Origin: Auanema rhodensis
Taxonomy: Eukaryota > Animalia > Nematoda
DNA length: 64,000 nucleotides
NCBI GenBank assembly: GCA_964057225.1
Contig: OZ059898.1
Location: 13,950,001 to 14,014,000, forward strand
Direction of reading: 5' to 3'
The notes beneath the pieces were generated by a model. That model did no database searches. It was not told where the DNA came from and saw only the letters and a list, made by a program, of their open reading frames with translations. Positions 1,003-35,419 of this stretch are shown here, one piece after another. A program made the position numbers and the translations under genes. The stretch's first letter is position 1. Every line of letters begins with the position of its first letter.

Positions 1003-1074
1003 TGCGTTCGGGGGGAATCGAACCCCCGTCGAATGCTTGGAAGGCATCCATGCTGACCATTACACCACGAACGC
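1003..1074 (-). tRNA. tRNA-Gly(TCC), consensus copy
   Basis: Identical to the consensus unit. Confidence 0.97.
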
Positions 1075-4000: not shown

Positions 4001-4785
4001 CACCACGAACGCTACGATGGCTCTTGAACTATTAGATTAGATGAGTTGACACATCTTTGACTTCATTGATAATTACGAATGAAAAGCAGTAACATATTTT
4101 TTTCAAACGTTCCACATCAAAAAATCAAAAATGGACAAGCTCAAGTATTTTCAAAATCTTTGCAACATATTGCAATCAAATCGTTCACAAAAAATGAAAA
4201 ATGTATGCGTTCGGGGGGAATCGAACCCCCGTCGAATGCTTGGAAGGCATCCATGCTGACCATTACACCTCGAACGCTACGATGGCTCTTGAACTATTAG
4301 ATTAGATGAGTTGACACATCTTTGACTTCATATATAATTACAGAATGAAAAGCAGAAACATATTTTTTTTAACGTTTCACATCAAAAAATCAAAAATGGA
4401 CAAGCTCAAGTATTTTCAAAATCTTTGCAACATATTGCAATCAAATCGTTCACAAAAAATGAAAAATGTATGCGTTCGGGGGGAATCGAACCCCCGTCGA
4501 ATGCTTGGAAGGCATCCATGCTGACCATTACACCACGAACGCTACGATGTCTCTTGAACTATTAGATTAGATGAGTTGACACATCTTTGACTTCATTGAT
4601 AATTACGAATGAAAAGCAGTAACATATTTTTTTCAAACGTTTCACATCAAAAAATCAAAAATGGACAAGCTCAAGTATTTTCAAAATCTTTGCAACATAT
4701 TGCAAAACGTCAAATCATTCAGCAAAAATGAAAAATGTATGCGTTCGGGGGGAATCGAACCCCCGTCGAATGCTTGGAAGGCATC

Positions 4786-5201
4786 TATCGCGAATGCGAT
4801 TATCCATCATTCAATCGATGCAATCTCATCACGTTGGCTGATGAGATTCACGGGCACTCTGTTTTTATACCACCGTCGCGGACGGTCGCTTTTCTCTCTC
4901 CTCGTTGCTGTCTTTATCTTATGACTCATCTAGTCTGAACCACCGTTTTATCCTTGTCCTTTAGTAAGACTATCTCTAGTCTCATTAGTGATGTATATCT
5001 AGTCTTATTACATTCACTCTAGTCTTCTATGTATTTTATCTAGTCTTATTATATATCTTCTAGTCCTTATATTCTGTATTATGTATATCTGAATGGCATA
5101 TGAATGAATCTTTCTTCCTCTAATAGTATTTTACGTTAACAGGGCATAGAATAGAAAGTGTGAACCTGGGAGGCTATTTGAAGAGCCCTCTATCTTCAAA
5201 A
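4786..5201 (+). repeat. 5' LTR of element A (416 bp, TATCGC...TTCAAAA)
   Basis: Direct repeat of 12125-12540; no difference seen by eye. Confidence 0.95.
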
Positions 5202-5211
5202 TGGTGCATCG
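5202..5211 (+). promoter_or_regulatory. Primer binding site complementary to the tRNA-Gly(GCC) 3' end
   Basis: TGGTGCATCG directly after the LTR; its reverse complement CGATGCACCA is the 3' end of eukaryotic tRNA-Gly(GCC) plus CCA. Confidence 0.85.
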
Positions 5212-7991
5212 GCATCACTTTCTACTCTATGACCTTTCTATTGCGCTACTTTATCTTTTTTCTTTTTTTTTCTTCAAGCCAGTCTGCTCGTTAATAGTGA
5301 CTCGTTGGATGTCCTTTACAGTATAAGTTCACTGATCTAAATACTCTAAAGGAATCGTATGTCAGTATGACATAATTGGTTGTTAAATATTGTCTAGATA
5401 TCAGTGATAATTAAACATTATTTAAAATTTTGGTTGATACCATATTTTTGTACCACATGATTACAGAAAGTAACATAGTGGGTTGTTCGCTATATAAACT
5501 CTATTGGATTACCCAATGGCTACTTCCTTTAACTTGCCGGCAGTGACTCAGCTGGGATTGATCACCCCTTATTATGTTTCACAGTATTTTCCTAGGAAGA
5601 ATATGCGAGAGTACGAGAAAAATGCAGACAAAGTACCAACAAACACATTTTATGGCGATCTTATTTTTACTGACTGAGGACAGTGAGAAACAATGATATG
5701 AATTACGCATTAGCAAAGCTACCGTCTAAAAACGCTATTTATTCATTTATTCTTTGATTTTGAGACCTTTTTATATCTTTTATATTTTACGTAACTTTCA
5801 ATAATCATTGCAAACAGTTTTGATAGACTTCGAGTGCAAAAGTTATTTTAACAATTGTGAATCAATTGAATAGGTGACTAAAAGGCATCTTAGACCAATG
5901 TCTCCTTGCTATATGAGTAATGCTGTCTGTTTCCTCATCTGTAAAGGAGTCAGTATCTTAGAGATCAACGATTATTTGTGAACATGTGTGGAAGGAGCCT
6001 ATCAACAAGGAACGTCTGTTGACCTACTTGTTGATGTTTGTTTGGTACCCTTGCACTCTCGGTAGGTGTTGTTTATATAAAAATGCGAAAGAGTTCCGAG
6101 TTTTTACTATTTACGGCTTGTTTTATAGTTTTTAAATTTCTTTATTCATCCATTGTCTGTAAATCTATTGTTTCCAACCATATGAGTCATATGTAACGAC
6201 CAACGGGTCAATGAGAAAGGTCAGAGTCCAAATCATGAAATTCATAAAATTTATATATTTTATCTTATATAAGATCATCACCCACGTTCTATAGGACAAA
6301 ATACATTAACTATATTGTTAAAATCCTACGCAGATGAAAATTTCTGTGAAAAATCACAAAACATCATAATATCCCATCCTACATAGATGAGATAATGATA
6401 AGACACGAAAGAGCTACGAATTATCATCCTACGCATGTTAAAGCATAAAATATAAATCTCAGCAAAGGTTAAGAGATATTTCCAACATTTTGCACCAAAA
6501 AGTCGATTTTAGCAAATATGTTGACAAGATACGCGAAAAAAGACAAAAGATGTTGCCATCTGTTCATTGACCTGGTGCGGCGCCATTAGCACCACGCAAA
6601 CATCTCTCACACATTATCTAGGTCATCATCGAATGACATGGAATATCAAAACATTTTAAAATGTTATGAGAAGTTAACCCACTCGTTTTGTTTCAAACGC
6701 ATTAAATAATCTCATTTAATAATCTTACATATACTTTTTGCAGATTAGCTCCTCCCTCTTAACATCCCACACGGCCTAGCTGCCAGACAGGTCATTCATT
6801 CCGCCGCTACAACCAGCCACAGCACCCGACGCCATCTGCTAACCTATTCACCAGACAAGGACAATCGACATCAAGGATCCTCAAGGAGAATCAAGTTAGT
6901 TTTCATTTGTTCGCATTAACACTTTAACCGCTTATTGAATTTGAATTGATACTCTCTGGTATCAATTATACATTTACATTAAGTTGGTAAGTTATTTTAT
7001 AATTTCAATTTGTTTTATTTTAATTTTATTATTTCACATTTTATATTGTTTATATTTCATTCACATCTGTTATCTTATACAATTTCCTTTGTTCATCTGT
7101 CCAGAAATAAATCTTTTGTCTCAAATCACTCATCCTTTTCATACACATACTTTCTGATCAATCAAACAATAATATTTTGAATATTTTTTGGATATCCTTA
7201 TTATATTTCAACCAATTAATATTAATATTGATATTATATTTTTTGATAAAAAACAACAGCATATTTAGTATCAAATTACTCAGAAAACTTTACTGAATTC
7301 ATCCAAGCTAGTTTGCTCACATTTTTTGATCGATTTTGGGAAACTCAATTTTTTCTCTCTATTTCCTACAGTAATCTCTCAACTTGAATTGTTCTCTCAT
7401 CTAGTGAATCATCCAATTTTTCTTTTTTAACCAGAGAAAGATACTTATTGAATTATCTTTGCCTGAACAATCTCCATTTTAAAAAAAAAAAAAAAAAAAA
7501 TTAAAAATATACTAACTTAGCTAACAAAAAAAAAAAAAAATATATTCAAAAGATAAAACATACATTTTTTTACAAAAGATTCCACACAAGTAATTTAACG
7601 AAACAGTAACAACTACACGAAAAAACTAACAGTATAACTCTCCAAAGAAAAAACTGTTAACAAATATTCAACTAAATATTCATTGTACCTTCTAATAGTG
7701 AACTATTTGCTTATCTTATTTGCTTATATTACTTGTTTATTTATATTCCTATTTATATTATATATTGTTATTCCTTCTATCGACAGCTATTATATTCGGA
7801 CTTTAATTCAATTGATTTTAATAATCAATCCACAAATTAGCTAGATTAAACACAAAATTAACTTGAACAATAATATTTCTCTTCAAACAAAATGATTATG
7901 AGTCCCTCTTCTCCATCGGAAACTCGTAACTCGTAACCTGACTGCCTTAGCAAGACAGTTAAGTTGTTTAAAAAGAAATATAACTCACGCG

Positions 7992-10900
7992 TTGAAGTTG
8001 TTCAACACGGTGAAGGAGGACATCCTCCCGTACCATCAAGCATTCATCTTCCCCCCGGTTGATGACATTGACAGATGTCGAGAGTTCATACATACGCACA
8101 AGCCTAGCTTGATGCGTATATATTATAAAGCCATCCCGGTTGGGGACGTCTTCCGATCACTACGAGATCAGTTAGACGAACATCGAGTGGTGCTCGAGGA
8201 ACGCACCCATGTGGACTACCCAGCAACTTGGTTGGAATTATACCAAGGTAGCTATAAAAGGATGTTGGCCAAACACCCTCAAGCCCATAAGACCATGAAA
8301 GCTCATGAAATCGACCAACTTGTCACCAAAGACATTGGCGAAGAACATCCGCCCACAGTTGCAAAACTGATCAAGGGCATTTTGGACTATTGTGATGAGA
8401 GAGATCTCATTGTGAACACAGGCGAAGTTGAGGAATATACTCAACTTATCCAACTTCGCCGAGATGAACTCGATGACTATCAGAGTTCATTTGACTCTAC
8501 AGTACATGACTCAACAACATTGCAAAATGACATGAACAGAATGAAATACTCCAGAAAAAATTTAGAGATGAGTTTCTTTTCTGGAATACAAAAACATTTA
8601 AACAACATTCAGAAAACACTTGACAAAATTTGGCAACGATGGCATAATGAATATGTCGTCGCCCTTCGAGCAACACACATGTTGGATCACAAGCAAGGAC
8701 ATTTCTCCACAGCTACACCAAAAGTAGGCACAGTAGTGCTAATGTCAGATGACAATACGAAACGAAACCAGTGGAAAATGGGTTTAATAACAAGCATACA
8801 GAACACGGAATCTGTGAGAGTTGCAGAAGTCCGTACATCTGATGGACACAAACTAATTAGACCCATCAATCGCCTGATTCCCCTTGAAATTCCTTCCGAC
8901 AACGAGCATCATACGGAAAACAGTCATACGCAGTCCCCACACAAATCAGACAAAACTGTCACGTTTAAAGAAACTCCAGAGGTCATTTTACTCGATAACG
9001 AAGTATCCACCGTTGTGGAAACCAGCACATCGACCGGACCCAATACAACTGAAAACGTGATAGACCCAAACGTTATCACTATCAACGATGATGATGACAT
9101 CGAAGTGATCACCATTGCAGATGATGAAGGTGAAAATGAACCACAACCTCGAAAACGACAACGTCTCCCCAGTTACACACATTTTTTCATAGCCATGATA
9201 CTGGGTATTCTCGTCAATACAATGTCCGCAACCAACATCTGCCAGTTCTCTTGCATCAAAGGAGGAGTAGGCATATCAAACTGCGGTACTGGACATCCCA
9301 TCCGAGTTTGTGCCCGAGAAACATGTGTAGAGTACAACCCAAATACTCCCAACTTCACCATAGTATTTCCGGCTCATGTTGTATTGCATGACCACACATT
9401 CATCTCACGACATATTATCGATAAAAATGACACATTTGCATTGCATCAACTGGATTGTCCAGCAACTCCGTTTTGCGATATGATTCAATGTCTGTTCTGT
9501 CTTGAACTACTCCACAACCCATCTTGTTTCCCATACGCAGCACTCTCGGCGACCGCACTCATCATATGGCTCATTCTATTTAGCATTCTTTTAAGCATCA
9601 TAGTCATCCGAATTTGTTCTAAAAAATTTGTTCATATTGCACAATACACCCTTTTTTCCGTTTGGCGTATGATCACTCAATGTCTCCCATCTCATATAAG
9701 ATCTCATATCTCTATTCAGGAAGAACGATCGGTACTCGAGTACGTCCCGCTCAGTTCTCACAAGCTACCTCGATGGCAGAAGTCTACACCCTCACAACGA
9801 TCACGACAACGTGACCGATTAGTTCACCGAGTCGGGTATCTTTTGGTTGCAATAATCGTCATTTTTTTGATTGAATCTCTTGTAGTTAATGCATGTACTA
9901 TTGTTCCTCCGAGTATATCACATGTTCCAGGCAACTCCGTCTCGAACTTATCACCTACCCACCAAGTCAACCAAGTCAGCAGCTCCACCACCCTCCATAC
10001 TTACGATAATGAGGTATGTTTCACAACTTCACATTCAAACCGATCATACGCCAATCCCCTCACGAACTCACACCTGCGCATCAAACTTATGTATACACGT
10101 ATACTGTGCACGAAAGTATCCTTATTTTTTACACGTCACACCATCGTAAAAACTGAATCCGCAAAACGGTGTCCCCATATGGGCTCTTGTGTAGGATCGT
10201 TTTGTGCGAACGTTCGACCCAATACATCAATCTCAGAACTCTCATTAGCCAACCAATATCCAGGTACCAGCTATTGTTCAGAAAGCTGTGGATTTCTATC
10301 ATGCGGTTGTGCGTTGCCAACTTCTGGTTGTCTCTTCTATCGCAACTTTCATGTTCCCAATGACAATATCACCCACGAAGTTTTCTACTGCTCACGATGG
10401 ACACCTAGGGTTTTTCTCCAGATTAGCATCCATACAGCTATTGAGAACAAAACTGAAACGATCTCGCACGTCCCCTTTTTACCACACTCTACAAAAATCA
10501 TTAACGGGTACCATATTACTCTTGGGAGAATAACATATTCTGATAATGAAATCCTCCATAGACGATTCATTACTTCCAACTCGAGAATTGCAGTTTTACC
10601 TCACTCTGCTACATTTTCATACTCGTGCGGAAAAGTTAAAACCGCTGACCCATTCTCCGAATGTACTGTAACAGACACATGTTCATGCAGACCAGCCGAA
10701 ACAGTCGAAAATTGCTATTGTCAGGACAGCAATCCTAACATGCTCTATACTAATAACTACACCCTACCATTATCTCTTCCATCTCTGACCATGATCCCAA
10801 AAAACAATCTCATTTTTGCTCATCCCATAAGCGCTGTTGACATTAAAATGTGGACAAATATCTCAGATGTCACTTATGAATACGACAATAGTCCTACTAT

Positions 10901-11534
10901 TTGCGAACTAAAATCCAAAGACCTAGTTGGATGTTTTGACTGTGTTACTGGAGCAACAACAATCATTACTTGCATCAGTACATCATCCCACATTCGAATT
11001 TCGTGCGACGATGAAGAATTTCTGCTTACATGCAATTCTCAGGGTTACAACAACTCTATTCCCATACAGAGCAATTTTTCAACACCGTCTATAACGTGTA
11101 CTCATCCGTGTACTTCCGCCACATTACATCTCAAAGGCAACTTGTACTACGTGAACGAATACATAGGTTTTGAACAGTCCACTCATCAGATTACAAACAG
11201 TTCATTCAGTCTCCTGAACGTCGAGTTTACCATACCGAGCTTTTTTGTACCCACTCACTTAATCAGCTCACTTGTTTCGTTTTACTCGGACTACCTTAAA
11301 ACGATTGTAATACTATTGAGTGTTTTGATCACAGTACTCGGCTTTGTAACCGCCGTAATTGACCGCGTCTTCCAGTTGTCAAGTACACCCGCTCTCCTAG
11401 CATATTTACCCATACAAATACTTATTATCTGCGCAATTCCTTTTCGCATCATTTTTTTCACAATTCATTTGTTGTTCAAGATTGTAGTTCGAGCCAGTCA
11501 TAGCGCAGTGGCTAAGGGTACGCACTCTCAGTGA
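7992..11534 (+). CDS. env: BEL/Pao-derived polyprotein: unknown N-terminus, DUF5641-like domain, phlebovirus Gn/Gc-like envelope glycoprotein; likely original ATG at 7892/7898 separated by a 7-bp duplication
   Basis: IWQRWHNEYVVALR...PKVGTVVL...RNQWKMGLI...RPINRLIPLE resembles DUF5641. Cys-rich ectodomains including KRCPHMGSC...PGTSYCSESCGFLSCGCALPTSGCLFYR and GCFDCVTGA. Internal signal and transmembrane segments. No protease, RT, RNase H or integrase core motifs. Confidence 0.85.
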   Translation: MKLFNTVKEDILPYHQAFIFPPVDDIDRCREFIHTHKPSLMRIYYKAIPVGDVFRSLRDQLDEHRVVLEERTHVDYPATWLELYQGSYKRMLAKHPQAHKTMKAHEIDQLVTKDIGEEHPPTVAKLIKGILDYCDERDLIVNTGEVEEYTQLIQLRRDELDDYQSSFDSTVHDSTTLQNDMNRMKYSRKNLEMSFFSGIQKHLNNIQKTLDKIWQRWHNEYVVALRATHMLDHKQGHFSTATPKVGTVVLMSDDNTKRNQWKMGLITSIQNTESVRVAEVRTSDGHKLIRPINRLIPLEIPSDNEHHTENSHTQSPHKSDKTVTFKETPEVILLDNEVSTVVETSTSTGPNTTENVIDPNVITINDDDDIEVITIADDEGENEPQPRKRQRLPSYTHFFIAMILGILVNTMSATNICQFSCIKGGVGISNCGTGHPIRVCARETCVEYNPNTPNFTIVFPAHVVLHDHTFISRHIIDKNDTFALHQLDCPATPFCDMIQCLFCLELLHNPSCFPYAALSATALIIWLILFSILLSIIVIRICSKKFVHIAQYTLFSVWRMITQCLPSHIRSHISIQEERSVLEYVPLSSHKLPRWQKSTPSQRSRQRDRLVHRVGYLLVAIIVIFLIESLVVNACTIVPPSISHVPGNSVSNLSPTHQVNQVSSSTTLHTYDNEVCFTTSHSNRSYANPLTNSHLRIKLMYTRILCTKVSLFFTRHTIVKTESAKRCPHMGSCVGSFCANVRPNTSISELSLANQYPGTSYCSESCGFLSCGCALPTSGCLFYRNFHVPNDNITHEVFYCSRWTPRVFLQISIHTAIENKTETISHVPFLPHSTKIINGYHITLGRITYSDNEILHRRFITSNSRIAVLPHSATFSYSCGKVKTADPFSECTVTDTCSCRPAETVENCYCQDSNPNMLYTNNYTLPLSLPSLTMIPKNNLIFAHPISAVDIKMWTNISDVTYEYDNSPTICELKSKDLVGCFDCVTGATTIITCISTSSHIRISCDDEEFLLTCNSQGYNNSIPIQSNFSTPSITCTHPCTSATLHLKGNLYYVNEYIGFEQSTHQITNSSFSLLNVEFTIPSFFVPTHLISSLVSFYSDYLKTIVILLSVLITVLGFVTAVIDRVFQLSSTPALLAYLPIQILIICAIPFRIIFFTIHLLFKIVVRASHSAVAKGTHSQ

Positions 11535-11576
11535 TTGATGACGGGTTCAATACCCAGTGAGTCCTCGATTTATTTT
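11489..11576 (+). ncRNA. Putative tRNA-like Pol III transcription unit inside element A
   Basis: A box TAGCGCAGTGG (11501-11511) and B box GGTTCAATACC (11544-11554) at tRNA spacing. GGG-TTCAATA-CCC T arm, flanking TCGAG/CTCGA inverted repeat, then TTTATTTT. Acceptor and anticodon stems are degenerate. Confidence 0.5.
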
Positions 11577-11761
11577 CTCGATTTCTTAGTTCCCTATCAT
11601 AGCAAACGATTGTTCAATTTGATTTACACCAGTCCTACACAATTTATCATTTTGCCGCGGGGAGGTATACTACGTATAAAAACCATCATTATTTCAGTCT
11701 TGATAACATCAAAGAATGGAGCGATTCCCTTGATCAACTCCAGGATAACGGCAACTCAAAG

Positions 11762-12091
11762 ATGCCTAACAAAAGTCAGAATACGTCTGCACCAAAAAAG
11801 CAGAACAACTCTAAAGTGAAGTACAGAAAAATGGAAGAAGACATGAAATGTCAACTCTGTTGGAAGAAGGGCCACACCATGGGAAAATGCACAGTCTACA
11901 AGACTGCAGCACAACGCGTCAAGCGTTGCAAGTTGATCAACATGTGCTTGAAGTGTTTGCGGAACCACTTTGGAAAACCGTGTGTGGAGAAGATGAAGAA
12001 AATATGTCATGTGTGCAAAGGAAGCGGACTGGACCACGATCATCCTGGTGTATTATGCAAGCTGCAGTTTGCGGAGGAACTAGCAGAATGA
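11762..12091 (+). CDS. Small basic triple zinc-knuckle (BEL Gag nucleocapsid-like) protein, 109 aa
   Basis: Lys-rich N-terminus, then CQLCWKKGHTMGKC / CLKCLRNHFGKPC / CHVC...HPGVLC. Same layout as the Gag Cys-His array in the element D polyprotein. Confidence 0.75.
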   Translation: MPNKSQNTSAPKKQNNSKVKYRKMEEDMKCQLCWKKGHTMGKCTVYKTAAQRVKRCKLINMCLKCLRNHFGKPCVEKMKKICHVCKGSGLDHDHPGVLCKLQFAEELAE

Positions 12092-12124
12092 AATCAGTTC
12101 TGATTTCTCTCTCCTGGCCCGGAA

Positions 12125-12540
12125 TATCGCGAATGCGATTATCCATCATTCAATCGATGCAATCTCATCACGTTGGCTGATGAGATTCACGGGCACTCTG
12201 TTTTTATACCACCGTCGCGGACGGTCGCTTTTCTCTCTCCTCGTTGCTGTCTTTATCTTATGACTCATCTAGTCTGAACCACCGTTTTATCCTTGTCCTT
12301 TAGTAAGACTATCTCTAGTCTCATTAGTGATGTATATCTAGTCTTATTACATTCACTCTAGTCTTCTATGTATTTTATCTAGTCTTATTATATATCTTCT
12401 AGTCCTTATATTCTGTATTATGTATATCTGAATGGCATATGAATGAATCTTTCTTCCTCTAATAGTATTTTACGTTAACAGGGCATAGAATAGAAAGTGT
12501 GAACCTGGGAGGCTATTTGAAGAGCCCTCTATCTTCAAAA
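12125..12540 (+). repeat. 3' LTR of element A
   Basis: Direct repeat of 4786-5201. Confidence 0.95.
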
Positions 12541-13212
12541 GCATCCATGCTGACCATTACACCACGAACGCTACGATGGCTCTTGAACTATTAGATTAGA
12601 TGAGTTGACACATCTTTGACTTCATTGATAATTACGAATGAAAAGCAGTAACATATTTTTTTCAAACGTTTCACATCAAAAATTCAAAAATGGACAAGCT
12701 CAAGTATTTTCAAAATCTTTGCAACATATTGCAAAACGTCAAACCATTCTTAAAAAATGAATGGTTTGAAGCGTTCGGGGGGAATCGAACCCCCGTCGAA
12801 TGCTTGGAAGGCATCCATGCTGACCATTACACCACGAACGCTACGATGTCTCTTGAACTATTAGATTAGATGAGTTGACACATCTTTGACTTCATTGATA
12901 ATTACGAATGAAAAGCAGTAACATATTTTTTTCAAACGTTTCACATCAAAAAATCAAAAATGGACAAGCTCAAGTATTTTCAAAATCTTTGCAACATATT
13001 GCAATCAAATCGTTCAGAAAAAATGAAAAATGTATGCGTTCGGGGGGAATCGAACCCCCGTCGAATGCTTGGAAGGCATCCATGCTGACCATTACACCAC
13101 GAACGCTACAATAGGTTGTGAACTATTAGATTAGATGAGTTGACACATCTTTGACTTCATATATAATTACGAATGAAAAGCAGTAACATATTTTTTTCAA
13201 ACGTTTCACATC
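12541..13212 (-). repeat. tRNA-Gly(TCC) array, segment 2
   Basis: Array resumes at the TSD; about 2.5 units. Confidence 0.96.
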
Positions 13213-13557
13213 CGTTCCATTCGGACTCCCCATATATGTAGCTGAAGGGTTAGAGCCAGACGACCAGAGGACCGAGGAATGGCTCCGCCTTCCCTCGTTC
13301 CCTTGGTCGGGAGTTCGCCTCTTAGCAAGCTCATGGACGGCTTGTAGTTTAGTCTTTATACTTATATTTATCTTATTGTATTGTATCTTTATCTTTGTAT
13401 ATTATTGTTGTAGTTTCATGCCAATAAATCTTTCTCTCTTTTATCTTATGATTGACCTTATGCTCTTTATTCCTTACCGCTACACCAAGGAATACTATGC
13501 GCGTCATAGTATAAACTACAATGGTTTATATTATCGACGCAGGAGCATAACGGAACG
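13213..13557 (+). repeat. 5' LTR of element B1
   Basis: Repeated at 16432, 35420 and 38635. Confidence 0.93.
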
Positions 13558-13570
13558 TGGAGGTTCCACC
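13558..13570 (+). promoter_or_regulatory. Primer binding site complementary to the tRNA-Gln 3' end
   Basis: TGGAGGTTCCACC is the reverse complement of GGTGGAACCT-CCA, the metazoan tRNA-Gln 3' end. Confidence 0.85.
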
Positions 13571-14545
13571 TCGAACTCATCTTTTGAAAAAAAAAAAAAT
13601 TTTTTTATTGTAAAAGTCCATTTTTGCATTCTAAATTATAAATTCCTCCACTTGAAACAACAAAATGAAGGCGCCAATTTGTTTTAAGGTACAGATACAA
13701 GGGATCTCGCTTAAATGCGAGATAGGACCAATAAAAATTTTTGCCCACCGTCCTCAATTTAAAACCGTCTGAATGTCCACCCTTTTCTATATCGTATCTT
13801 GTACCGCTTCTCATGCCATTTTGAGGACGTTTGGATTGAAATAGAGGACAATTTCGCCAAACGAGAAATTATAATTGTTCACATTTTTTTTTTGGGCATA
13901 GAGAAGTTTGATTATTGGAACAAAAAGTTATAAGACGCGCGCAATTGATTATAGTTTGTATATTTTGTGGTCAGGACTAGAATTTTGAAAAATTATTATA
14001 TTCAGACGTAAAAGATCATTTTACATATTATTTTGCGGGAAACCAAAAACGGTTACATAAATTGAATATAAAAAGAGACCACACTAGTCCGAAAAAGCCT
14101 GGTAAATCTGCAATAAGACTTCTCAGCTCTTATTTGACAGTCAGGTCAAGTTGGCGGAAGCATAACTGCTACGGATTTTATCCCCGTAGATTATGTCACC
14201 TTCCTCAAATCATTTCGTTGTTTCAACTCATAAGATACCCCTTATTTCCTACAGTAATCCTAAGTAAATTGGAAATGTTTAAAAATAGACGTATTTTTCT
14301 CATTTTTTAAAAGAAATTCGCTTAGGAAAACGCACTTTTGCTTATTTTGATCAAGAAAAAGGACAGCCTTTTCAATAACTCTCCTCAAACCTCATTAGCA
14401 TGCACAATGTCGAAAACATTTTGAGCAAAACATGCTATTTAAGGGAAAAGGAATGAGGAAAAGATTGCAAACATAAGTCCATTTTCTTGACGAAAACAGA
14501 GCAAAGTGCACAAAAATAAAAACACAGAGTACAAACTTTATTCAG

Positions 14546-16431: not shown

Positions 16432-16771
16432 CGTTCCATTCGGACTCCCCATATATGTAGCTGAAGGGTTAGAGCCAGACCACCAGAGGACCGAGGAATG
16501 GCTCCGCCTTCCCTCGTTCCCTTGGTCGGGAGTTCGCCTCTTAGCAAGCTCATGGACGGCTTGTAGTTTAGTCTTTATACTTATATTTATCTTATTGTAT
16601 TGTATCTTTATCTTTGTATATTATTGTTGTAGTTTCATGCCAATAAATCTTTCTCTCTTTTATCTTATGATTGACCTTATGCTCTTTATTCCTTACCGCT
16701 ACACCAAAGAATACTATGCGCGTCATAGTATAAACTACAATGGTTTATATTATCGACGCAGGAGCATAACG
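16432..16771 (+). repeat. 3' LTR of element B1 (truncated by 5 bp)
   Basis: Direct repeat of 13213-13552. Confidence 0.93.
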
Positions 16772-25815: not shown

Positions 25816-26206
25816 AGTGCCGTAGCTACAAAAATCGGATATTAATAAACTTGAATAAGGTGAGTGAACTAACATATTTCAAACTATATATTTAATTTCA
25901 TTTACAATATTGATCCATCACACACTCTCACCAAATTGAAAATCATTATTAAAAGGTCAGTTAGAACGATTGCTTAACATCTTTAATGAACACTTTTCAT
26001 GTATGCAACAGCTCCACAAAAAGAAAACATGCGAAACGGAAAGTTTTTTAAAAATTAAATTTCGATTCTTTTAACACTTCATGTTCAACTAATGTAAAAA
26101 ATTTTTTCCTGATAGTATAATCTCTAATTTGAAAAAAACATAAAATTTCAAACTACAACTTTTGTATTTTGGTATACTTAGTATAAAGATATTTTTTTTG
26201 GTAAAC

Positions 26207-26385
26207 TTGGTATACTTGATCAATTTGGTAAACTTGGTAACCTTGTAAAGTGTTCATAAATTAATATTAGGTATACTTTGGTAAACCTGGTAAACCTGGT
26301 ATACCATATAACTATGGTAAACTTGTCTATTGCGTGGTAAACCTAGTTTGGTAAACCTAAAGTTTGGTAAACTTGTCAGTTTGCC
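26207..26385 (-). repeat. Right TIR of MULE C1
   Basis: Inverted copy of 22195-22373. Confidence 0.93.
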
Positions 26386-26957
26386 GTCGAATGCTTGGAA
26401 GGCATCCATGCTGACCATTACACCACGAACGCTACAATAGGTTGTGAACTATTAGATTAGATGAGTTGACACATCTTTGACTTCATTGATAATTACGAAT
26501 GAAAAGCAGTAACATATTTTTTTCAAACGTTTCACATCAAAAATTCAAAAATGGACAAGCTCAAGTATTTTCAAAATCTTTGCAACATATTGCAATCAAA
26601 TCATTCACAAAAAATGAAAAATGTATGCGTTCGGGGGGAATCGAACCCCCGTCGAATGCTTGGAAGGCATCCATGCTGACCATTACACCACGAACGCTAC
26701 GATGGCTCTTGAACTATTAGATTAGATGAGTTGACACATCTTTGACTTCATTGATAATTACGAATGAAAAGCAGTAACATATTTTTTTCAAACGTTTCAC
26801 ATCAAAAATTCAAAAATGGACAAGCTCAAGTATTTTCAAAATCTTTGCAACATATTGCAATCAAATCATTCACAAAAAATGAAAAATGTGTGCGTTCGGG
26901 GGGAATCGAACCCCCGTCGAATGCTTGGAAGGCATCCATGCTGACCATTACACCACG
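26386..26957 (-). repeat. tRNA-Gly(TCC) array, segment 4 (~2 units)
   Basis: Array units between the MULE and element D. Confidence 0.96.
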
Positions 26958-27398
26958 TTTGGACTATGAATCCAAGAGTTATTCCAGGGGAATAGCTGTA
27001 GTATTACTCGTTCGACGTGATACAGGAGTTAATACCGTTTAGGAGTATTAACGAAGGTTGATACTCGAAGAGAGTATTATCAGGGTTGAACTTCGCAGAT
27101 TTGGGTTAAAAAGGTTTATTAAATAAAGATGGTACAGTGGTAGAAAAGTTAGATTCGAAAGTGAAGGTTTCTTGGGTTTATATATGATTTAGCTTAAGGG
27201 TGATATTTGATATTTGAATAGAAAGGTCACGTTAATGTAAACTATAGAGGTGATAAAAGTTCAACATCCTTTGAGAATGTTGCGCAATAGGTTAATGATA
27301 CAATTATTCGGTTAATAGATAATGGTTTAGTATTTCAGAAGAGTTATGTTTATATTGTAAATCATTATATTTTGTTAATAGTCAGGCATTTGCCGACA
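26958..27398 (-). repeat. 3' LTR of element D
   Basis: Direct repeat of 34863-35303. Confidence 0.96.
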
Positions 27399-30300
27399 TT
27401 GCCGGGCGAGGGTTGCGATTTGAATTTTTCAAACAGCAATAAGAGAGGATAGCTGGTAGAAGGAAAGGAGCGAGAAAGGAGAGGGCTGTGTATAAGATAT
27501 ATGAACATGCTGTGACTGCAGCTACGACGGGTACGATCCATTTCCAATTATTCTGGATCACTTCTATTAGAGGTTCCAAGTTGGGGAGATTCCAAGAGAG
27601 TCCAGATGTTCCATTATGTAGTTTGATCAGTTCTTCTGAAATTGTAGTGTCACTTATGTAGTGTAATCTGGTACTTAGCTGGATAAATTGCTTTGTTGCT
27701 CTTCCGCATGTTAGAGTACAATTTTCTTGTACTTTGGGTTCATTGAAGTATAGTTTTATCGTTGTGGCGGGATTTTTGTCGGAGCATCGAATTATAGTAG
27801 AAAAGGAATCGCAGTTCAGTATTGCATTTAACTCGTCCTTTGTTTCACATGTCATGTTTAGCGTTGTTCCTTCTTTGCATTTATAACATCCTGTTATCAT
27901 TTGAAAATCTGAAAAACAAGGATGTCTATTAGTGTATAGACTTTCGATGCTAAATTGCGGGTTTTGCATTGTGAGCGTTGATTCTTCCATTTTTGATAGA
28001 ACTGTTATAGTTCCTGCTTCTTTTGTTATCCTATAATTCGTATTAATTTTTGGAAGCTCATATTTTTTCAGTTCTCTTTGCGTCGCTGAATCGCAATTGC
28101 AAGAGAGCTGTGCTGCGGCCCCCAAACATGGGCAAGGCTTTCTTATGTGGCATGCATTAAACTTATCTGCCGCCATTCTTGCATTGCTGCATATAACAGC
28201 TGGTTTTATTTGCTCCGTTATCATGTAGTTGTTTGTCTCAGATGTTAAAAAAATTTTGTTGTACAGTTCCGTTGTTGCTTTTGCTGTGACTGACGAAATC
28301 TGTAATGATATTCCGTGAAACTCGTATTTTCGGTAGGGCTGTAGCAAAATGTCGTATTTTTGAGTGTTGTTGAGGTATATGATCGTTAATTTTGCTTGCA
28401 CTTCTTGCTTCCATTGTATGCATTTGATCTCTTCGTATACTTCTTTGTTCTCTGGTTGATAAGTTGGTCTAAATAAAATGCATCCTTCTATAGGAAGTCC
28501 ACAGCTGTTGAATAGTCCTCCTCCGGCTCTGGTGCAGTAGGTTCTTCCAGGATTTTCGTATGCAGAATATAGTTCGGATACAAATGTATCCTGTCGAATA
28601 TCATCGCATCCGGTGCCCCAGGGGCAATGAGTTGTACCGGCGCATCTATGAGAGGAGTGAATGGTTAGGTTAGTTATTCTAGTGAATCCTTGCGAAACTT
28701 TTTGGCATGAAAATTTATGTTGAATTAATTGAATTTCTAGTTTTCCTATAGTGGAGTTTTGATATTTGATGTAGGAGCAGAGAGAGTTTTGTAAGGGATT
28801 GAATGAAATTTCTTCGTTGGTTATTTTGGTGCAGTTTTGTATATCGTCGCAAAAGATTTCTATGTTTTTATGAGCGTTGGGGGATCCACAAGCTTGCGCC
28901 TGGCATATGAGAAAAAAGAGTGTGAATAGGAGGGAAGGGATGTACGAAATGGTGGGCTCGTTCTGTCGGCGGTATGTTCTTAGTCTTCTGTAGATTAGAC
29001 CACAGCTAATGAATAAAAGAGCGCAGCCAATTAATGGCGTAAGTACTATAAGAATAGCTAAGATTGGATTACAGTGAGGATTGCCTATGATATGTAGGAT
29101 GAATGGCGGTGGGAAGTCACATGGGTGAGGAAGTTTGCATGTTTGATTCTGAGTTGACTCCAAGTTGAAGCGTGAAACGGATGCTGTTTTTGGTAAAACT
29201 GAAATAGGTAGTGGGATTATTTCGGATTGGTGTGCAGAGAGATTATGGCAGCTGGAGTCGATGCATATTGTTGAGTGGTTTGGTTGTGCTGGAAATACCA
29301 CTTGTGATGTTGAACACCTGATTATCGGTTGGGTCATAGCAACTGAAAATATTTGTATTAGCATCAGAAAACGAAAAATGTTCCTTAGCCGGTTCGGATT
29401 GGTTGGTGTGTGTGAAAGATGATTGACAGTTATTTCCTGTGATTCTCTTCCTTTGTCGAAATTGTCCTTGAGCTCGAGTGGGTAGAGTTTTTCAACTGGT
29501 TTCGTGAGTTCTTTGCCGTTTCCTAATTTAATTCTTGCGGATCTGAATATGTTATCCGAAGACGGTAGTAGGGCAGTAATGCGCGCCATTTGCCAGTTGC
29601 ATCTGTTCAGGTTATCTTCTTCCACAAGGACCACCTCATTTAGCGTTGGGTGGTTAGAACTTCTGTGCGTTTGTTTTGTGGATGCGTGGGCATTACGGAG
29701 ACATAGAAGATATTCCTTGGACCACCGATCCCAGAATGATTCCGCTATAATTTCCACTTTCTGCAGATTTTCAAATGCTTCTTTATTCGTTTGTATTGGG
29801 TTTGGTTCATCCAAGGCTTGTCCCAATTGTTCTACGTTACCTCCTGGTACGAGAACGGGGCTGCCGTTATTCAAGAAATCTGCTGGTGTCAGGGGTCGGT
29901 CGTCTACATTATCTGAATTTGTATAGGTGATCGGTCTGGAATTTATTATTCCTTCGATCTTTATAATTGCCGTCGTTAGTTGGTCTTTGTTGACCAATTT
30001 AAGCTGCAATGATTTGTAGAGCGAAGTTTTTACTATCGCAACCAGTCGCTCCCATACTCCTCCAGTCCATGGGGCACTGGGAGTGTTAAAAATCCATGTA
30101 ATGTGGTGTTTTTGTAAAAATTTTGTGAAACTTGTTCTATGTTCACTATCATAAGTTTCTAACATGTTAAGTATCTTAGCCGAGTGAACAAAATTGCTCC
30201 CATTGTCCGAACGGATAACGTCCGGTAATCCTCTGCGAGCTACGAATCTTATAAATGCATTGAGGAATGTATTAGAGGTCATGTCGTTAATTGGTTCGAG

Positions 30301-33300
30301 GTGAACTGCTCGAACCGTTAGACATGTAAAGATTACTATATATATTTGTTCACTTTTTCTATATTTAATGGGTCCGATACAGTCTAGCCCCGTATGCTTA
30401 AATGGCATAGCTTTTGTAATTCGATCTTCTGGCAGAGGTGCCAGAAAATCTGTGGTGAATGGGCGACTGAGTATTTTTTGACACGGGACGCACTTTTTTA
30501 TAATTGATTTGCATACCTGCCTTGTTCCTGCCATGAAAAACTTTTGAAAAAATAGGCTGATCAGATGTGTAGTTCCCAGGTGTGCATTTTCTTTATGTAT
30601 GGAAAGCAAAATTAGTTTACCTAAATCAGATTTTTTGGGTAGTAAAAAGGGATACTTTGTGGATGCAGGCAATTTGGCGTTAAGCAAACGTGTTTGAATT
30701 ATACGTAATCCGTTGTTATCCTTGGTGGTGCGAAATTGCTTTATTTCCGATTGTTTTAATTTTTTCTGGGCCTCTTGTATGAGAAAGAGATCTGCGGTTT
30801 GGGATTGCTGCTTTTCCTTTTGCGCTCGTTGTAGCATGGTTGATGTTGGGGTTTTGTTTATTTTCTGCAATAGTACTAGCGCGGCTTTAAATACCAAACC
30901 TGTGGTCCGTTGTAGTTTGGAGTACGAATTAAATCTTCCTGGTTGTATTATTGACTCGTATGATTGAATATCAGTAGATACGGGTAGAATGAGTATGGGG
31001 GGTTCGTCTTCGTCTATTGGAGCGGTGAGTTCCTTTATTGGTCTGTTGTCCATTTGTGATAGCCATGGTGGAGAAAACAACCAGCGTTCCTTTAACAGAT
31101 TTTGGTCTGTTGTCCCTCTAGTTCCAATGTCTGCTGGATTATGGTCGGTATCAACATAGTGGAAGTGTAGTGAAGCTTTTTGAGCTTCCAACCTTCTTCC
31201 TATTTCTTCAATGTTTTGCCGCATATTACTGATAAAAACGGGGACACTTTTTTTCGTTATAAGCCAAGATAGAGCTATTTGGCTATCTGACGCAATGTTA
31301 ATTGCCAGATTCGGCTCGTTCAAATTATTGTATATTGTTTCCGCGATTTTCATTCCCATAAAAATTGCGGATAGTTCTAAGCGCGGGATGGTCAAAGTCC
31401 TATTTTTGGGGGCTAATTTTACTTTCCCCATTATGATTGGAGCTCTTTCTGTGTTGGTAGTTAAATAGGCGCATGCTGCAATAGCTTTTGTGCTTGCGTC
31501 TACAAAAACCCACAGTTCTTTCTTGTCTCTTTTGCTAGATAATTCCCGCGGAACTTCAATGTTGAACGGCCCTATTTTTGTGCTGGCTTTGTTCCAATCG
31601 GCGACGAGATCCTCGGGGACTTGCTCCTTCCAATCGACATTGCTGTTCATTACTTGTCTTAAAATAATTTTATATGGAAGTAGGAGCGGTGCCGCTAGTC
31701 CTATGGGGTCATATATGCTGTGTAAACTACTCAGCATATCTCGTTTAGTAAAAGACTGTTGCATACGCATTTGTCCTGTTAATACAAACGAATCTTTACT
31801 GGCGTTATATAGTACACCTAGTATTTTGGGATTTTTATCTGGGTGGTGATCTATCGCCGGAATTTCGTTGTTAAAATGGGATGAGTTACTAAAGTATTCT
31901 CTAACATTCATCGAAATTTGAGAGAATATTTTCTTTGAATCTTTATATAAATCGGTTAGTTCTTTTTGATCATTGGTTGTATAAAAAATATTATCTACAT
32001 AAAGATATCTTAGGGTTTTTTCTACAAATGGTGAGGTGTGGCTATTCAAATACGCGTGTAACGACATGTTTAATACAGCGGGGCTTGCCGTAATGCCAAA
32101 AGCTAACCTATTAAATCGAAATTCTATTATATTGTTTGGTGTAGGCGGCTTATTGACATCTTTCAACCAAAGAAAGCGACAGAGATCTTTACAATCATTA
32201 GCTATGCGTATTTGTGTGAAAGCACCTTCAATATCACACATCAGAAAATACGATTTGGTACGAATACCTATCAAGATATCGAGAATTTTGTTGGTGAAGC
32301 TCTCACCTGTTGAGGTTATGTCATTTAGAGAGAGTTGTCCTTTTTGTTTAGCAGATGCGTTAAAGACTATGCGAAGAGGCTTGGTTTTTTGGGGTTTCCA
32401 CACACCGCGATGTGGCATATAATAAGTTCTGGTCGCCTCAACATCTGCCGGGACTAACTCTATTACGTTTTCTTTTAAATATTGTGAGAACGTTTCTTGA
32501 TAGTATTTTTGTTGATTGGGGTCTTTTTGTAAGGATATTTGAAGACGATTAAGTGTTGCCAAAGCAAGATTACGGTTAGATTGAATATTTATGGCGTTTT
32601 TCTTTAGTGGGAGAGGGGCGGTTATGTAGCCGTTATCAAACGTAAGTAAAGTAGAATATTCGTTATAGAATAGTTCTGATTTGTTCAAAGCTCCTTCATG
32701 TGGAGCAATGCCCAAACTATCTATTTCGAATAATTGTTTAATCATAACTTCCTCCGGTATTTGAGGGTTTATGATTAAGGAATGGACGGCTATGGATTCA
32801 TGGGTATTATTTGTTTTTCCATAAATACAGGGACCAAAGTGGGTGTGTTTAATTTTTAGACCCGATGGTAATGAAATGGATGGCTCTTCAGTTATTACTG
32901 AATCATACCAATCCATACCTAACAAAATGTCGGGTGAGAATGTTTCCCCATTAATGAATTGATTGGTGACGGAAATTTTGGTTTTTTCAAGAAATTCTCT
33001 ATCCCGGATTTGTAGAGAACAGCATTTTAGGTTTCCGGTGAGTGGTTTTGGGGATGTTAGCAAAATTAGTTTAATTATTTTTCCATATGGGGTTTGCAAA
33101 ATAGCTTCGACTGTTTTTGTTTCAAAAGTTTCTTTATTGCCCGAAAATCCGGTTGCTGTAATGTTTTGTGTTGCTAAGGTATTCAAGTTGCATGTCTCAG
33201 CTGTCTTTTGATGGATGAAGCTTTGAGTTGCTCCGGGGTCAAGAAATATGGTTTTAGTATGATAAGTGTTTGTTAAAGGATTTAAGAGAGAGATTTGAGA

Positions 33301-34599
33301 AGTCATGAGGTAAGCGGGAGAAGGATGGAAAGATTTAGATATAGTGGTGCAATTCATGGACGGTTTAGTAATTTTGATGGTTGGCTTAGGTAGGCATAAA
33401 GTATAATTATGCTCTTTTTTGCAGTTTCGGCAACTTTCGAATTTGCACTTACTGCTTGAGTGTGTTGGACTAAAGCAAATCCAACACCTATTTTTTCTCT
33501 TTATAATCTCTCTTCGTTCTTGGGGGGTGGTTATCGTGGGGCATTTTGTAGGGCGATGACCCTGCTTATCGCAAAAAACGCAGGGTCGTTCTGATTTTTC
33601 TGAGGATTTGATGGGTTTTGAGAAAAAGGGCTGAGTTTGGTCTCGATACTGAGGTTCGGATCGTTCTCGTCTTAAATAAGCCGAGGTTTCCTTTGAGTAT
33701 GCTATACCCTCTATGTCCTTCAGAATTTGACTTATAGTATTTTCGCCGGGCGATCGCCAACAGCGCATATCTATAATTTCTTCAGGAAATTTCTCAGATA
33801 TCTCTGTGACCCAAGCTGGGTCTTCAGTATTGTATATATATTGAGATCTTGCTCTGTCGAGTTGGTCGAGCAAAGCTCGAATCTCATTAACTCGGGATCT
33901 CAAAGAGGTGGGGTCGGATTTTGCGACAGGTAATCTCCTGATATTACGGTATATGCGAAAGTCAACCGCTAATATCGGTTGATATGTGTTTTGTAAGGTT
34001 TCGATTATTTGGTGATAAAATTCGCCGTTTAAAGGCTTATTCTCGAGATGAACCCTGGCAGGTCCTTGTAGGGCTTCTGCCAAAAAAATGTTTTTCTGTT
34101 GTATATTTAGGCTAGGTTCATTGTGAATGAGGGTTTTGAATTGGTTCCAAAAGAGTGGAAATGTTAAGGAGTCTCCGTTAAATGTGGGAATCGAAAGTTG
34201 AGGTGTTTTAACGGAGAGACCAAAGCTAGTTCGCGTTGGTCTTTTATTCCGATCCGACTCTTGGTCGTCTTCGGAATCGGGGAGGGGTTGTTTTTTAGCT
34301 GTTTTGGTTTCTAGTTCCAAAATCAGGATGTTCGCTCTTGTTACTGTGTCAGCATGAAGCGTGGTTACCTCGTTTATTCTTCTGTTCAATTCAGAAAACG
34401 TAGGTTCGGGGAGAAGAGAAGCAAGAGTAGCGAGAGATGATTCTTCAGACCTAAGTTGTGTGAGAGATGTGTGTAGGCGTAGAAGCGAAATGTTTTCTTG
34501 GTTCTCGGTTTTAGTTTTTATGAGTAGTTTGGCTAGTTGCTCAAATTTGTCTGCGAAATTGTGGAGTTTTTCATTGAAAACTTCTTCAGTACGGTCCAT
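27382..34599 (-). CDS. Gag-Pro-RT-RNaseH-Integrase-DUF5641-Env polyprotein, BEL/Pao family
   Basis: DUF1759-like IPTFNGD; triple zinc knuckle CVFCDKQGHRPTKC; protease FLDPGAT; RT YMPHRGV...CDIEGAF...FGITASP...YVDN; RNase H FVDAS...TIPRLEL...SDS...NPADIGTRG; integrase H-H-C-C, LDCIGP, SDNGSNF, GVWERLV; FWDRWSKEYL; Cys-rich phlebovirus Gc-like C-terminus with a transmembrane segment. Confidence 0.97.
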   Translation of the reverse strand: MDRTEEVFNEKLHNFADKFEQLAKLLIKTKTENQENISLLRLHTSLTQLRSEESSLATLASLLPEPTFSELNRRINEVTTLHADTVTRANILILELETKTAKKQPLPDSEDDQESDRNKRPTRTSFGLSVKTPQLSIPTFNGDSLTFPLFWNQFKTLIHNEPSLNIQQKNIFLAEALQGPARVHLENKPLNGEFYHQIIETLQNTYQPILAVDFRIYRNIRRLPVAKSDPTSLRSRVNEIRALLDQLDRARSQYIYNTEDPAWVTEISEKFPEEIIDMRCWRSPGENTISQILKDIEGIAYSKETSAYLRRERSEPQYRDQTQPFFSKPIKSSEKSERPCVFCDKQGHRPTKCPTITTPQERREIIKRKNRCWICFSPTHSSSKCKFESCRNCKKEHNYTLCLPKPTIKITKPSMNCTTISKSFHPSPAYLMTSQISLLNPLTNTYHTKTIFLDPGATQSFIHQKTAETCNLNTLATQNITATGFSGNKETFETKTVEAILQTPYGKIIKLILLTSPKPLTGNLKCCSLQIRDREFLEKTKISVTNQFINGETFSPDILLGMDWYDSVITEEPSISLPSGLKIKHTHFGPCIYGKTNNTHESIAVHSLIINPQIPEEVMIKQLFEIDSLGIAPHEGALNKSELFYNEYSTLLTFDNGYITAPLPLKKNAINIQSNRNLALATLNRLQISLQKDPNQQKYYQETFSQYLKENVIELVPADVEATRTYYMPHRGVWKPQKTKPLRIVFNASAKQKGQLSLNDITSTGESFTNKILDILIGIRTKSYFLMCDIEGAFTQIRIANDCKDLCRFLWLKDVNKPPTPNNIIEFRFNRLAFGITASPAVLNMSLHAYLNSHTSPFVEKTLRYLYVDNIFYTTNDQKELTDLYKDSKKIFSQISMNVREYFSNSSHFNNEIPAIDHHPDKNPKILGVLYNASKDSFVLTGQMRMQQSFTKRDMLSSLHSIYDPIGLAAPLLLPYKIILRQVMNSNVDWKEQVPEDLVADWNKASTKIGPFNIEVPRELSSKRDKKELWVFVDASTKAIAACAYLTTNTERAPIIMGKVKLAPKNRTLTIPRLELSAIFMGMKIAETIYNNLNEPNLAINIASDSQIALSWLITKKSVPVFISNMRQNIEEIGRRLEAQKASLHFHYVDTDHNPADIGTRGTTDQNLLKERWLFSPPWLSQMDNRPIKELTAPIDEDEPPILILPVSTDIQSYESIIQPGRFNSYSKLQRTTGLVFKAALVLLQKINKTPTSTMLQRAQKEKQQSQTADLFLIQEAQKKLKQSEIKQFRTTKDNNGLRIIQTRLLNAKLPASTKYPFLLPKKSDLGKLILLSIHKENAHLGTTHLISLFFQKFFMAGTRQVCKSIIKKCVPCQKILSRPFTTDFLAPLPEDRITKAMPFKHTGLDCIGPIKYRKSEQIYIVIFTCLTVRAVHLEPINDMTSNTFLNAFIRFVARRGLPDVIRSDNGSNFVHSAKILNMLETYDSEHRTSFTKFLQKHHITWIFNTPSAPWTGGVWERLVAIVKTSLYKSLQLKLVNKDQLTTAIIKIEGIINSRPITYTNSDNVDDRPLTPADFLNNGSPVLVPGGNVEQLGQALDEPNPIQTNKEAFENLQKVEIIAESFWDRWSKEYLLCLRNAHASTKQTHRSSNHPTLNEVVLVEEDNLNRCNWQMARITALLPSSDNIFRSARIKLGNGKELTKPVEKLYPLELKDNFDKGRESQEITVNHLSHTPTNPNRLRNIFRFLMLIQIFSVAMTQPIIRCSTSQVVFPAQPNHSTICIDSSCHNLSAHQSEIIPLPISVLPKTASVSRFNLESTQNQTCKLPHPCDFPPPFILHIIGNPHCNPILAILIVLTPLIGCALLFISCGLIYRRLRTYRRQNEPTISYIPSLLFTLFFLICQAQACGSPNAHKNIEIFCDDIQNCTKITNEEISFNPLQNSLCSYIKYQNSTIGKLEIQLIQHKFSCQKVSQGFTRITNLTIHSSHRCAGTTHCPWGTGCDDIRQDTFVSELYSAYENPGRTYCTRAGGGLFNSCGLPIEGCILFRPTYQPENKEVYEEIKCIQWKQEVQAKLTIIYLNNTQKYDILLQPYRKYEFHGISLQISSVTAKATTELYNKIFLTSETNNYMITEQIKPAVICSNARMAADKFNACHIRKPCPCLGAAAQLSCNCDSATQRELKKYELPKINTNYRITKEAGTITVLSKMEESTLTMQNPQFSIESLYTNRHPCFSDFQMITGCYKCKEGTTLNMTCETKDELNAILNCDSFSTIIRCSDKNPATTIKLYFNEPKVQENCTLTCGRATKQFIQLSTRLHYISDTTISEELIKLHNGTSGLSWNLPNLEPLIEVIQNNWKWIVPVVAAVTACSYILYTALSFLAPFLLPAILSYCCLKNSNRNPRPAMSANA

Positions 34600-34851
34600 T
34601 GCTACCGTTTTTTGATTTTTTGATGCAAAATGTATGACTTTTGAATTTCTTAGTTGAATTGTTGCAAAATGTGTTGGTAACTTTTTTGATTTTGAGATTG
34701 AGATAGAGATAAAGATTCAGATGAGATGAGATGAAGCAAAGAAGTTTAAAGAATGTGATGATGAAGAAAAGTAAACAAATGAACTGAGAAATAAAAAGTG
34801 AGAATAGAAAATAATACAAAAAGGTTTCTAACAATTGATACCTGATTTGGA

Positions 34852-34861
34852 CGATGCACCA
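34852..34861 (-). promoter_or_regulatory. Primer binding site of element D, tRNA-Gly(GCC)
   Basis: Minus strand TGGTGCATCG, 1 nt after the 5' LTR. Confidence 0.85.
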
Positions 34862-34862
34862 A

Positions 34863-35303
34863 TTTGGACTATGAATCCAAGAGTTATTCCAGGGGAATAG
34901 CTGTAGTATTACTCGTTCGACGTGATACAGGAGTTAATACCGTTTAGGAGTATTAACGAAGGTTGATACTCGAAGAGAGTATTATCAGGGTTGAACTTCG
35001 CAGATTTGGGTTAAAAAGGTTTATTAAATAAAGATGGTACAGTGGTAGAAAAGTTAGATTCGAAAGTGAAGGTTTCTTGGGTTTATATATGATTTAGCTT
35101 AAGGGTGATATTTGATATTTGAATAGAAAGGTCACGTTAATGTAAACTATAGAGGTGATAAAAGTTCAACATCCTTTGAGAATGTTGCGCAATAGGTTAA
35201 TGATACAATTATTCGGTTAATAGATAATGGTTTAGTATTTCAGAAGAGTTATGTTTATATTGTAAATCATTATATTTTGTTAATAGTCAGGCATTTGCCG
35301 ACA
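34863..35303 (-). repeat. 5' LTR of element D (TGTCGG...CCAAA)
   Basis: Direct repeat of 26958-27398. Confidence 0.96.
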
Positions 35304-35419
35304 CCACGAACGCTACAATAGGTTGTGAACTATTAGATTAGATGAGTTGACACATCTTTGACTTCATATATAATTACGAATGAAAAGCAGTAACATATTT
35401 TTTTCAAACGTTTCACATC

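Follow-up and report, generated by a model that had tools for sequence, protein, structure and literature searches.

Mobile elements inside the tRNA genes of a tandem tRNA-Gly array in the nematode Auanema rhodensis

Introduction

The stretch analysed here, 64,000 nucleotides of contig OZ059898.1 of Auanema rhodensis (assembly GCA_964057225.1, positions 13,950,001 to 14,014,000 of the forward strand; hereafter the window), is a tandem array of tRNA-Gly genes into which mobile elements have been inserted. Of the four elements, which we call A, B, C and D, three split the 72-nt tRNA sequence itself. This raises the question whether such elements are directed to the bodies of tRNA genes or whether a redundant array simply tolerates them. 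We consider it rather probable that the elements integrated in an array that tolerates them, and that the excess of insertions in the gene body reflects chance or a generic local bias.

Several mobile elements are known for their association with multicopy RNA genes. R1/R2 and Pokey live in ribosomal DNA (rDNA) arrays, where they are site-specific and occupy many units. Ty1, Ty3 and the Dictyostelium elements TRE and DGLT-A leave tRNA genes intact and integrate next to them, at characteristic distances upstream or downstream. Dada elements insert within multicopy small-RNA genes, including tRNA genes, with one fixed site per family, duplications of 6-7 bp and no terminal inverted repeats (TIRs) (PMC3706591). 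For BEL/Pao elements and Mutator-like elements (MULEs), no title on the targeting of tRNA genes was found in the literature that we searched, and a review of targeting to genes transcribed by RNA polymerase III (Pol III) does not mention Pao.

Insertion sites in the array

Element ends were taken from self-BLAST, the junctions were read directly and the flanking repeats were compared exactly. The four elements are the following, with positions counted from the first base of the window.

4786-12540, plus strand: element A, 7755 bp, non-autonomous and derived from a long terminal repeat (LTR) element of the env-bearing BEL/Pao type (Atlas/Cer13-like)
13213-16771, plus strand: element B, 3559 bp, LTR-type and non-coding, located in the spacer; its orientation is inferred from the purine tract before the right LTR
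22195-26385, no strand assigned: element C, 4191 bp, a non-autonomous TIR transposon with a 9-bp duplication
26958-35303, minus strand: element D, 8346 bp, an env-bearing BEL/Pao element (Atlas-like belpaovirus) that is apparently intact, with no breaks counted

The duplication of A, GCATC (4781-4785 and 12541-12545), corresponds to nt 27-31 of the tRNA, in the 5' strand of the anticodon stem. That of C, GTCGAATGC (22186-22194 and 26386-26394), corresponds to nt 39-47, and that of D, CCACG (26953-26957 and 35304-35308), to nt 6-10. In all three cases an uninterrupted tRNA is regained once the element and one copy of the duplication are discounted. Element B interrupts the spacer at a point about 106 bp upstream of the closest 5' end of a tRNA, and it is flanked by a 9-bp repeat with one mismatch (TTTCACATC / TTCCACATC). 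Array units themselves vary at the mismatched position, about 72 with T and 15 with C. The direct reading of the junctions thus agrees with an earlier note on this DNA, which had described three elements in the 72-nt tRNA with duplications at these positions and B as the only element in the spacer. Its span of 4781-35308 runs from the outermost base of the first duplication to that of the last one.

The three gene-body sites differ in position and in duplicated sequence, and they have no common motif. The orientations differ as well, since A lies on the plus strand, opposite to the tRNA, and D on the minus strand, the same as the tRNA. These observations bear on the idea that each element recognises the tRNA-Gly sequence specifically, in the manner of Dada. 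Like Dada, the elements sit within multicopy small-RNA genes; all three duplications lie inside the gene, and Dada shows gene-body specificity to exist (PMC3706591). However, there is no motif shared by the three sites, and with more than 116 targets available each element is found just once, the second copy of C (C') being a segmental duplicate. The 9-bp duplication and the 180-bp inverted ends of C, whose site is seen once, also differ from the shorter duplications and missing inverted repeats of Dada, and on these two features we rejected C as a Dada element. We regard sequence-specific recognition as very unlikely.

Chance and base composition

Under a uniform null with a target share of 0.27, the probability of at least three of four insertions falling in the tRNA is 0.063, which reproduces the value of about 0.06 in the earlier note. 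It becomes 0.051 if the duplication must lie wholly in the gene (share of about 0.25). The excess of three in four is not significant, and it was noticed post hoc among many features.

The tRNA is also distinct from the spacer in its composition. It has a G+C (GC) content of 58% vs 28% in the spacer and is the sole GC-rich part of the unit, and of A/T runs of at least five bases there are five in the spacer and none in the tRNA. The tRNA holds 67% of the 5-mers with at least three G/C, 92% of those with at least four, and 71% of the 9-mers with at least five. The local GC of the three gene-body sites lies in the 86th-93rd percentile, that of the B site in the 46th. Conditioning on GC is partly circular and shows merely that the data cannot separate the two properties: being in the tRNA and being in GC-rich or open DNA are fully confounded in this array. 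Since the tRNA is the sole GC-rich island, the same picture is predicted if elements generally prefer DNA that is GC-rich, nucleosomal or open. Integrases of the retroviral type prefer nucleosomal DNA that is bent, and open or GC-rich DNA is favoured by many TIR transposons.

An apparently intact Atlas-like element and a relative without detectable gag-pol

Element D is organised as follows, all on the minus strand and with domains assigned by Pfam.

34863-35303: 5' LTR, 441 bp, with the primer-binding site just inside it, at about 34849-34862
27382-34599: single uninterrupted open reading frame (ORF) of 2405 aa, Gag-Pol-Env in one frame
33775-34182: gag domain DUF1759
33115-33252: aspartic protease
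31903-32337: reverse transcriptase (RVT_1)
31282-31749: Peptidase_A17 (Pao), 3e-38
30076-30627: integrase zinc and core domains (Integrase_H2C2, rve)
29476-29766: DUF5641, 8e-18
27682-28851: Phlebovirus_G2 (1e-45) and Phlebo_G2_C, in the same 2405-aa ORF
26958-27398: 3' LTR, 441 bp, 100% identical to the 5' LTR

The identical LTRs, the 5-bp duplication and the Pao-type domains in their expected order place D in BEL/Pao (Belpaoviridae), and the phlebovirus-like class II fusion glycoprotein in frame after Pol makes it Atlas-like. The best match of the envelope among solved structures is 7a4a (E = 1e-22), followed by phenuivirus Gc proteins. The title of this PDB entry is 'Integrase catalytic domain-containing protein'; we take it to be the Gc of the hookworm Atlas virus, a link that no tool confirmed. 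In a collection of 5.8 billion proteins the nearest proteins are from Haemonchus contortus, Ancylostoma ceylanicum and Necator americanus, with 38-40% identity in Pol, and identity to Caenorhabditis is 31%. The relatives found carry BEL/Pao-type protein annotation, and the protein of D itself was absent among the matches in that collection. Because the nearest strongylid relatives share just 38-40% Pol identity, D represents a new, divergent and undescribed lineage of Atlas-like elements. Its similarities would by themselves point to a clade V nematode as the probable host.

With its LTRs, single Gag-Pol-Env frame, Pao-type domains and Phlebovirus_G2, D resembles both Cer13 of C. elegans and Atlas virus. 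The latter, a belpaovirus from A. ceylanicum, likewise has identical LTRs and encodes Gag, Pol and Env in a single frame (PMC9094657). The unbroken frame and identical LTRs of D are a further likeness to it, and D appears to be an endogenous belpaovirus that is intact and was inserted very recently. The two differ in the length of the polyprotein (2405 aa in D vs 2828 aa) and of the LTR (441 bp vs 271 bp), and in that D sits inside a tRNA gene, whereas the Atlas-virus papers examined (including PMC9094657) do not contain the word tRNA.

The partial tRNA beside the 3' LTR of D (26891-26962, nt 6-72) scores 47.7 bits, above the Rfam gathering threshold. It retains both internal promoter regions and the terminator, and therefore Pol III factors could still bind there.

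Element A is a related LTR element in which much of this coding capacity was not detected. Its parts, all on the plus strand, are these.

4786-5201: 5' LTR, 416 bp, 100% identical to the 3' LTR; the primer-binding site starts at 5202
7992-11534: open ORF of 1180 aa, with DUF5641 at about 8601-8885 and Phlebovirus_G2 at about 9978-10823
12125-12540: 3' LTR, 416 bp, from self-BLAST and exact repeat comparison

In Pfam searches, gag, protease, reverse transcriptase/RNase H and the integrase core were undetectable in A, and the ORF holds just DUF5641 and Phlebovirus_G2. A thus lacks the Pao-type reverse transcriptase and protease by which a BEL/Pao element is recognised. Upstream of the ORF, the internal region has 31% GC and a longest stop-free stretch of 70 aa; the D protein gave no match there in tblastn, and no coding remnants were found in this 5' part. 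We count one large internal loss or replacement as the break in A, and 0 stops and 0 frameshifts in the remainder. The homology between A and D is confined to the ORF of A, at 30% identity in the integrase C-terminus and 24% in the envelope. Their primer-binding sites share the first 10 bases (5202-5211 in A), and both LTRs end in an A-run. It is because of the homology to D and the shared start of the primer-binding site that we file A as a defective BEL/Pao derivative, and A and D are distantly related within a single clade of BEL/Pao elements that carry env. As the LTRs of A are identical, we infer that A was copied very recently, with proteins supplied in trans.

We also compared the primer-binding sites by hand with the 3' end of the array's own tRNA-Gly as a candidate primer. 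Just 7 of the first 10 positions match, and therefore the primer tRNA of A and D is probably a different one.

The kinship of A and D, seen in the envelope type, the ORF homology and the primer-binding site, changes the basis of the earlier note, which had spoken of three unrelated transposons. Taken together with a chance probability of about 0.06, the confounding with GC, and sites that differ in position, sequence and orientation, it leaves the proposal of gene-body targeting by three unrelated transposons without support.

A narrower form of targeting concerns the BEL/Pao lineages only. The integrase of Atlas-like elements, in the lineages of A and D, might be drawn to tRNA genes bound by TFIIIC/TFIIIB, or to the whole array, and integrate within the protected or bent gene body. 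Both insertions of the BEL/Pao type are in the gene body and both are very young. The two elements have diverged to 24-30% protein identity, yet their envelopes are of one type and their primer-binding sites agree in the first 10 bases; this would fit a trait of the whole clade, and reviews describe the repeated evolution of Pol III targeting by LTR elements in compact genomes. As with Ty1, Ty3, TRE and DGLT-A, retroelements are here associated with tRNA genes, and the genome is probably compact. However, those known tethered elements land at set distances outside the gene, whereas here the gene body is split, and at varying positions. There are only two events, which differ in position (nt 27-31 for A, nt 6-10 for D) and in orientation, and if B at about 106 bp upstream is added, no characteristic distance to the Pol III start of the kind known from Ty3 emerges. 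The integrase region of D contains no extra Pfam domain beyond the usual BEL/Pao set, and the silence of the Atlas-virus papers on tRNA also counts against tethering. We therefore hold tethering to Pol III chromatin to be unlikely, though it deserves to be kept in mind. The broader claim, that Atlas-like belpaoviruses and perhaps the TIR element too prefer the bodies or arrays of Pol III-transcribed tRNA genes, seems to us more doubtful still.

If targeting were true, this would be the first Pol III-directed integration in BEL/Pao and the first case of an LTR element targeting the inside of a gene rather than its side. BEL/Pao would be the third lineage of LTR elements to use Pol III genes as safe havens, and the finding would matter for the question of how endogenous viruses with env survive in compact nematode genomes.

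Number of independent insertions

Two further blocks in the window are copies of B and C.

35420-38974, plus strand: B', duplicate of B, copied with its flanks by segmental duplication
42544-46734, no strand assigned: C', duplicate of C, from which it differs at one of 4191 positions; its 9-bp duplication is the same and its flanks have 0-1 mismatch

They belong to a tandemly duplicated block of about 22 kb that holds B, a stretch of array and C (13130-26957 and 35304-47306). The 116 bp to the left of B and B' are identical, as are the 295 bp to the left of C and C', and the 572 bp to the right of C and C' differ by one base. The tRNA now occupied by D is where sequence of the type found right of C gives way to the type found left of B. 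Between the elements there are 20 units from B to C vs 13 from B' to C'. The block was thus tandemly duplicated by unequal exchange, and the arrays between the elements have changed since. We considered B' and C' as independent hits and rejected this, as they were copied together with their flanks. Since they are segmental copies, the independent insertions remain four, the number that the earlier note had assumed. All of this marks the array as recombinationally active, with B and C duplicated along with their flanks and unit counts that have become unequal.

Long near-identical repeats assemble poorly, and B/B' and C/C' are 99.7-99.98% identical, so that one may ask whether the elements have been misplaced in a collapsed or mis-joined repeat array. 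This would hardly produce exact duplications of the expected length, or flanks that restore an uninterrupted tRNA or spacer, or the consistent private variants in the units flanking both copies of B and C. An assembly artefact is to our mind scarcely credible.

The LTRs mark the insertions as young: they are 100% identical in A and in D, and in B they have 2 differences in 340 positions.

A redundant and conserved tRNA array

The units are 265-269 bp long, are arranged head-to-tail and have about 95% identity to each other (TRF). ARAGORN called 116 tRNA genes in the window, all on the minus strand, of which 114 have the anticodon TCC (Gly), one TCG and one ACC. Each unit consists of the 72-nt tRNA, a run of five T located 5 nt downstream and then about 197 bp of AT-rich spacer. 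Array DNA makes up about 32.4 kb, or about 121 units, and the remaining 31.6 kb (49% of the window) are six inserted blocks.

The tRNA sequence is identical in 87 of the 116 called copies, and the other 29 differ by 1-3 substitutions. In an alignment of 86 complete units, 0 tRNA columns have a minor allele of at least 5%, vs 28 spacer columns, and mean per-site diversity is 0.0044 in the tRNA vs 0.0566 in the spacer, that is 13-fold lower in the tRNA. The units were picked by an anchor in the 3' part of the tRNA, which gives a slight bias for that part; the count over all 116 copies agrees with the alignment on the constraint of the tRNA. In an Rfam scan of 4300-47400 the main tRNA variant scores 68 bits, and no RNA family other than tRNA was found there in spacer or elements. 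The A-box and B-box regions and the downstream run of five T were read directly in array units. With a cloverleaf, promoter boxes, a terminator and constraint, the units look like functional Pol III tRNA genes, as far as can be judged from the DNA.

Probable tolerance of integration by a redundant array

Our preferred explanation is that of tolerated integration. The loss of one gene among more than 100 would cost nothing, and the array would in this way tolerate insertions. Four independent recent insertions, of D, A, B and C, would then have accumulated, with A, the relative of D without gag-pol, probably copied using the proteins of another element. Afterwards, unequal crossing-over would have duplicated the block of about 22 kb with B and C. 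In every 267-bp unit the tRNA is the sole GC-rich stretch without A/T runs, which may have given rise to a generic bias; it would be wrapped in a positioned nucleosome if silent, and TFIIIC-bound and open if active. Dedicated recognition of tRNA genes by the elements would not be needed. Next to targeting, the earlier note had offered a safe harbour in the redundant array as an alternative, and this alternative fits the contents of the window.

Several points weigh against this explanation. Two lineages of env-bearing BEL/Pao elements, both with identical LTRs, are found no more than about 22 kb apart in one tRNA array, and if such elements are rare in the genome, the array as a whole would be strongly enriched in them over random integration. 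The insertions are also so young that selection has had little time to act. Furthermore, tolerance alone leaves a preference for the gene body over the equally dispensable spacer unexplained.

As in the rDNA arrays with R1/R2 and Pokey, a redundant tandem array of RNA genes here holds gene-disrupting insertions and turns them over by unequal exchange. The difference is that four different elements are found here, in one unit each. We would class the locus as a new case in which a redundant array of RNA genes serves as a mobile-element sink. Its present value is descriptive: it presents a very large tRNA-Gly(UCC) tandem array as such a sink, an apparently intact and very divergent Atlas-like endogenous virus, and a clear record of unequal exchange moving elements together with array units.

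Elements B and C

The two remaining elements have these repeats.

13213-13552 and 16432-16771, plus strand: LTRs of B, 340 bp, with 2 mismatches
22195-22373 and 26207-26385, no strand assigned: TIRs of C, 180 bp, with 98% identity

No coding capacity and no coding remnants were found in B. Its termini are CG...CG and its flanking repeat is 9 bp long, unlike the usual TG...CA and 4-6 bp.

The inverted ends of C are packed with the 9-bp motif GGTTTACCA. The earlier note had called C a MULE. The 9-bp duplication and the 180-bp inverted ends agree with this, as MULEs have duplications of 9-11 bp and long inverted repeats. However, no transposase was detected in C by a Pfam scan of its 18 ORFs of 43-87 aa, nor could kinship to an autonomous MULE be established, and the label stays unproven. 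The end of the TIR gave no match in metagenome contigs. Merlin elements also make duplications of 8-9 bp, and because of this we do not regard the superfamily of C as settled as MULE.

Array blocks and variant units

The array is divided by the insertions into the following blocks, all on the minus strand.

1-4785: first block, ending within a tRNA at the left duplication of A
12541-13212: 2.5 units from A to B, starting with the right duplication of A
16772-22194: 20 units from B to C, ending with the left duplication of C
26386-26957: 2.1 units from C to D, from the right duplication of C to the left duplication of D
35304-35419: 116 bp from D to B', starting with the right duplication of D
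38975-42543: 13 units from B' to C' (ARAGORN, TRF)
46735-64000: about 64 units, of which one, at 50848-50918, is scrambled

Units of 265 bp and of 269 bp occur, and several spacer variants are found at intermediate frequency. These length and spacer variants suggest a higher-order repeat structure and frequent unequal exchange. Among the 29 variant tRNA copies, some are altered in the D-loop or the T-loop. The copies at 54118-54189 and 62159-62230 carry single-base changes in the anticodon, TCC to TCG, which reads as Arg, and TCC to ACC.

The scrambled unit consists of short tRNA and spacer fragments. One fragment begins at tRNA nt 10, the edge of the D duplication, and another ends at nt 43, inside the C duplication. 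We considered this unit as a footprint of earlier insertions and rejected it, with about 0.1 coincidences with a D-edge breakpoint expected by chance. The matches of the breakpoints are probably coincidence, and the unit could be a repair scar.

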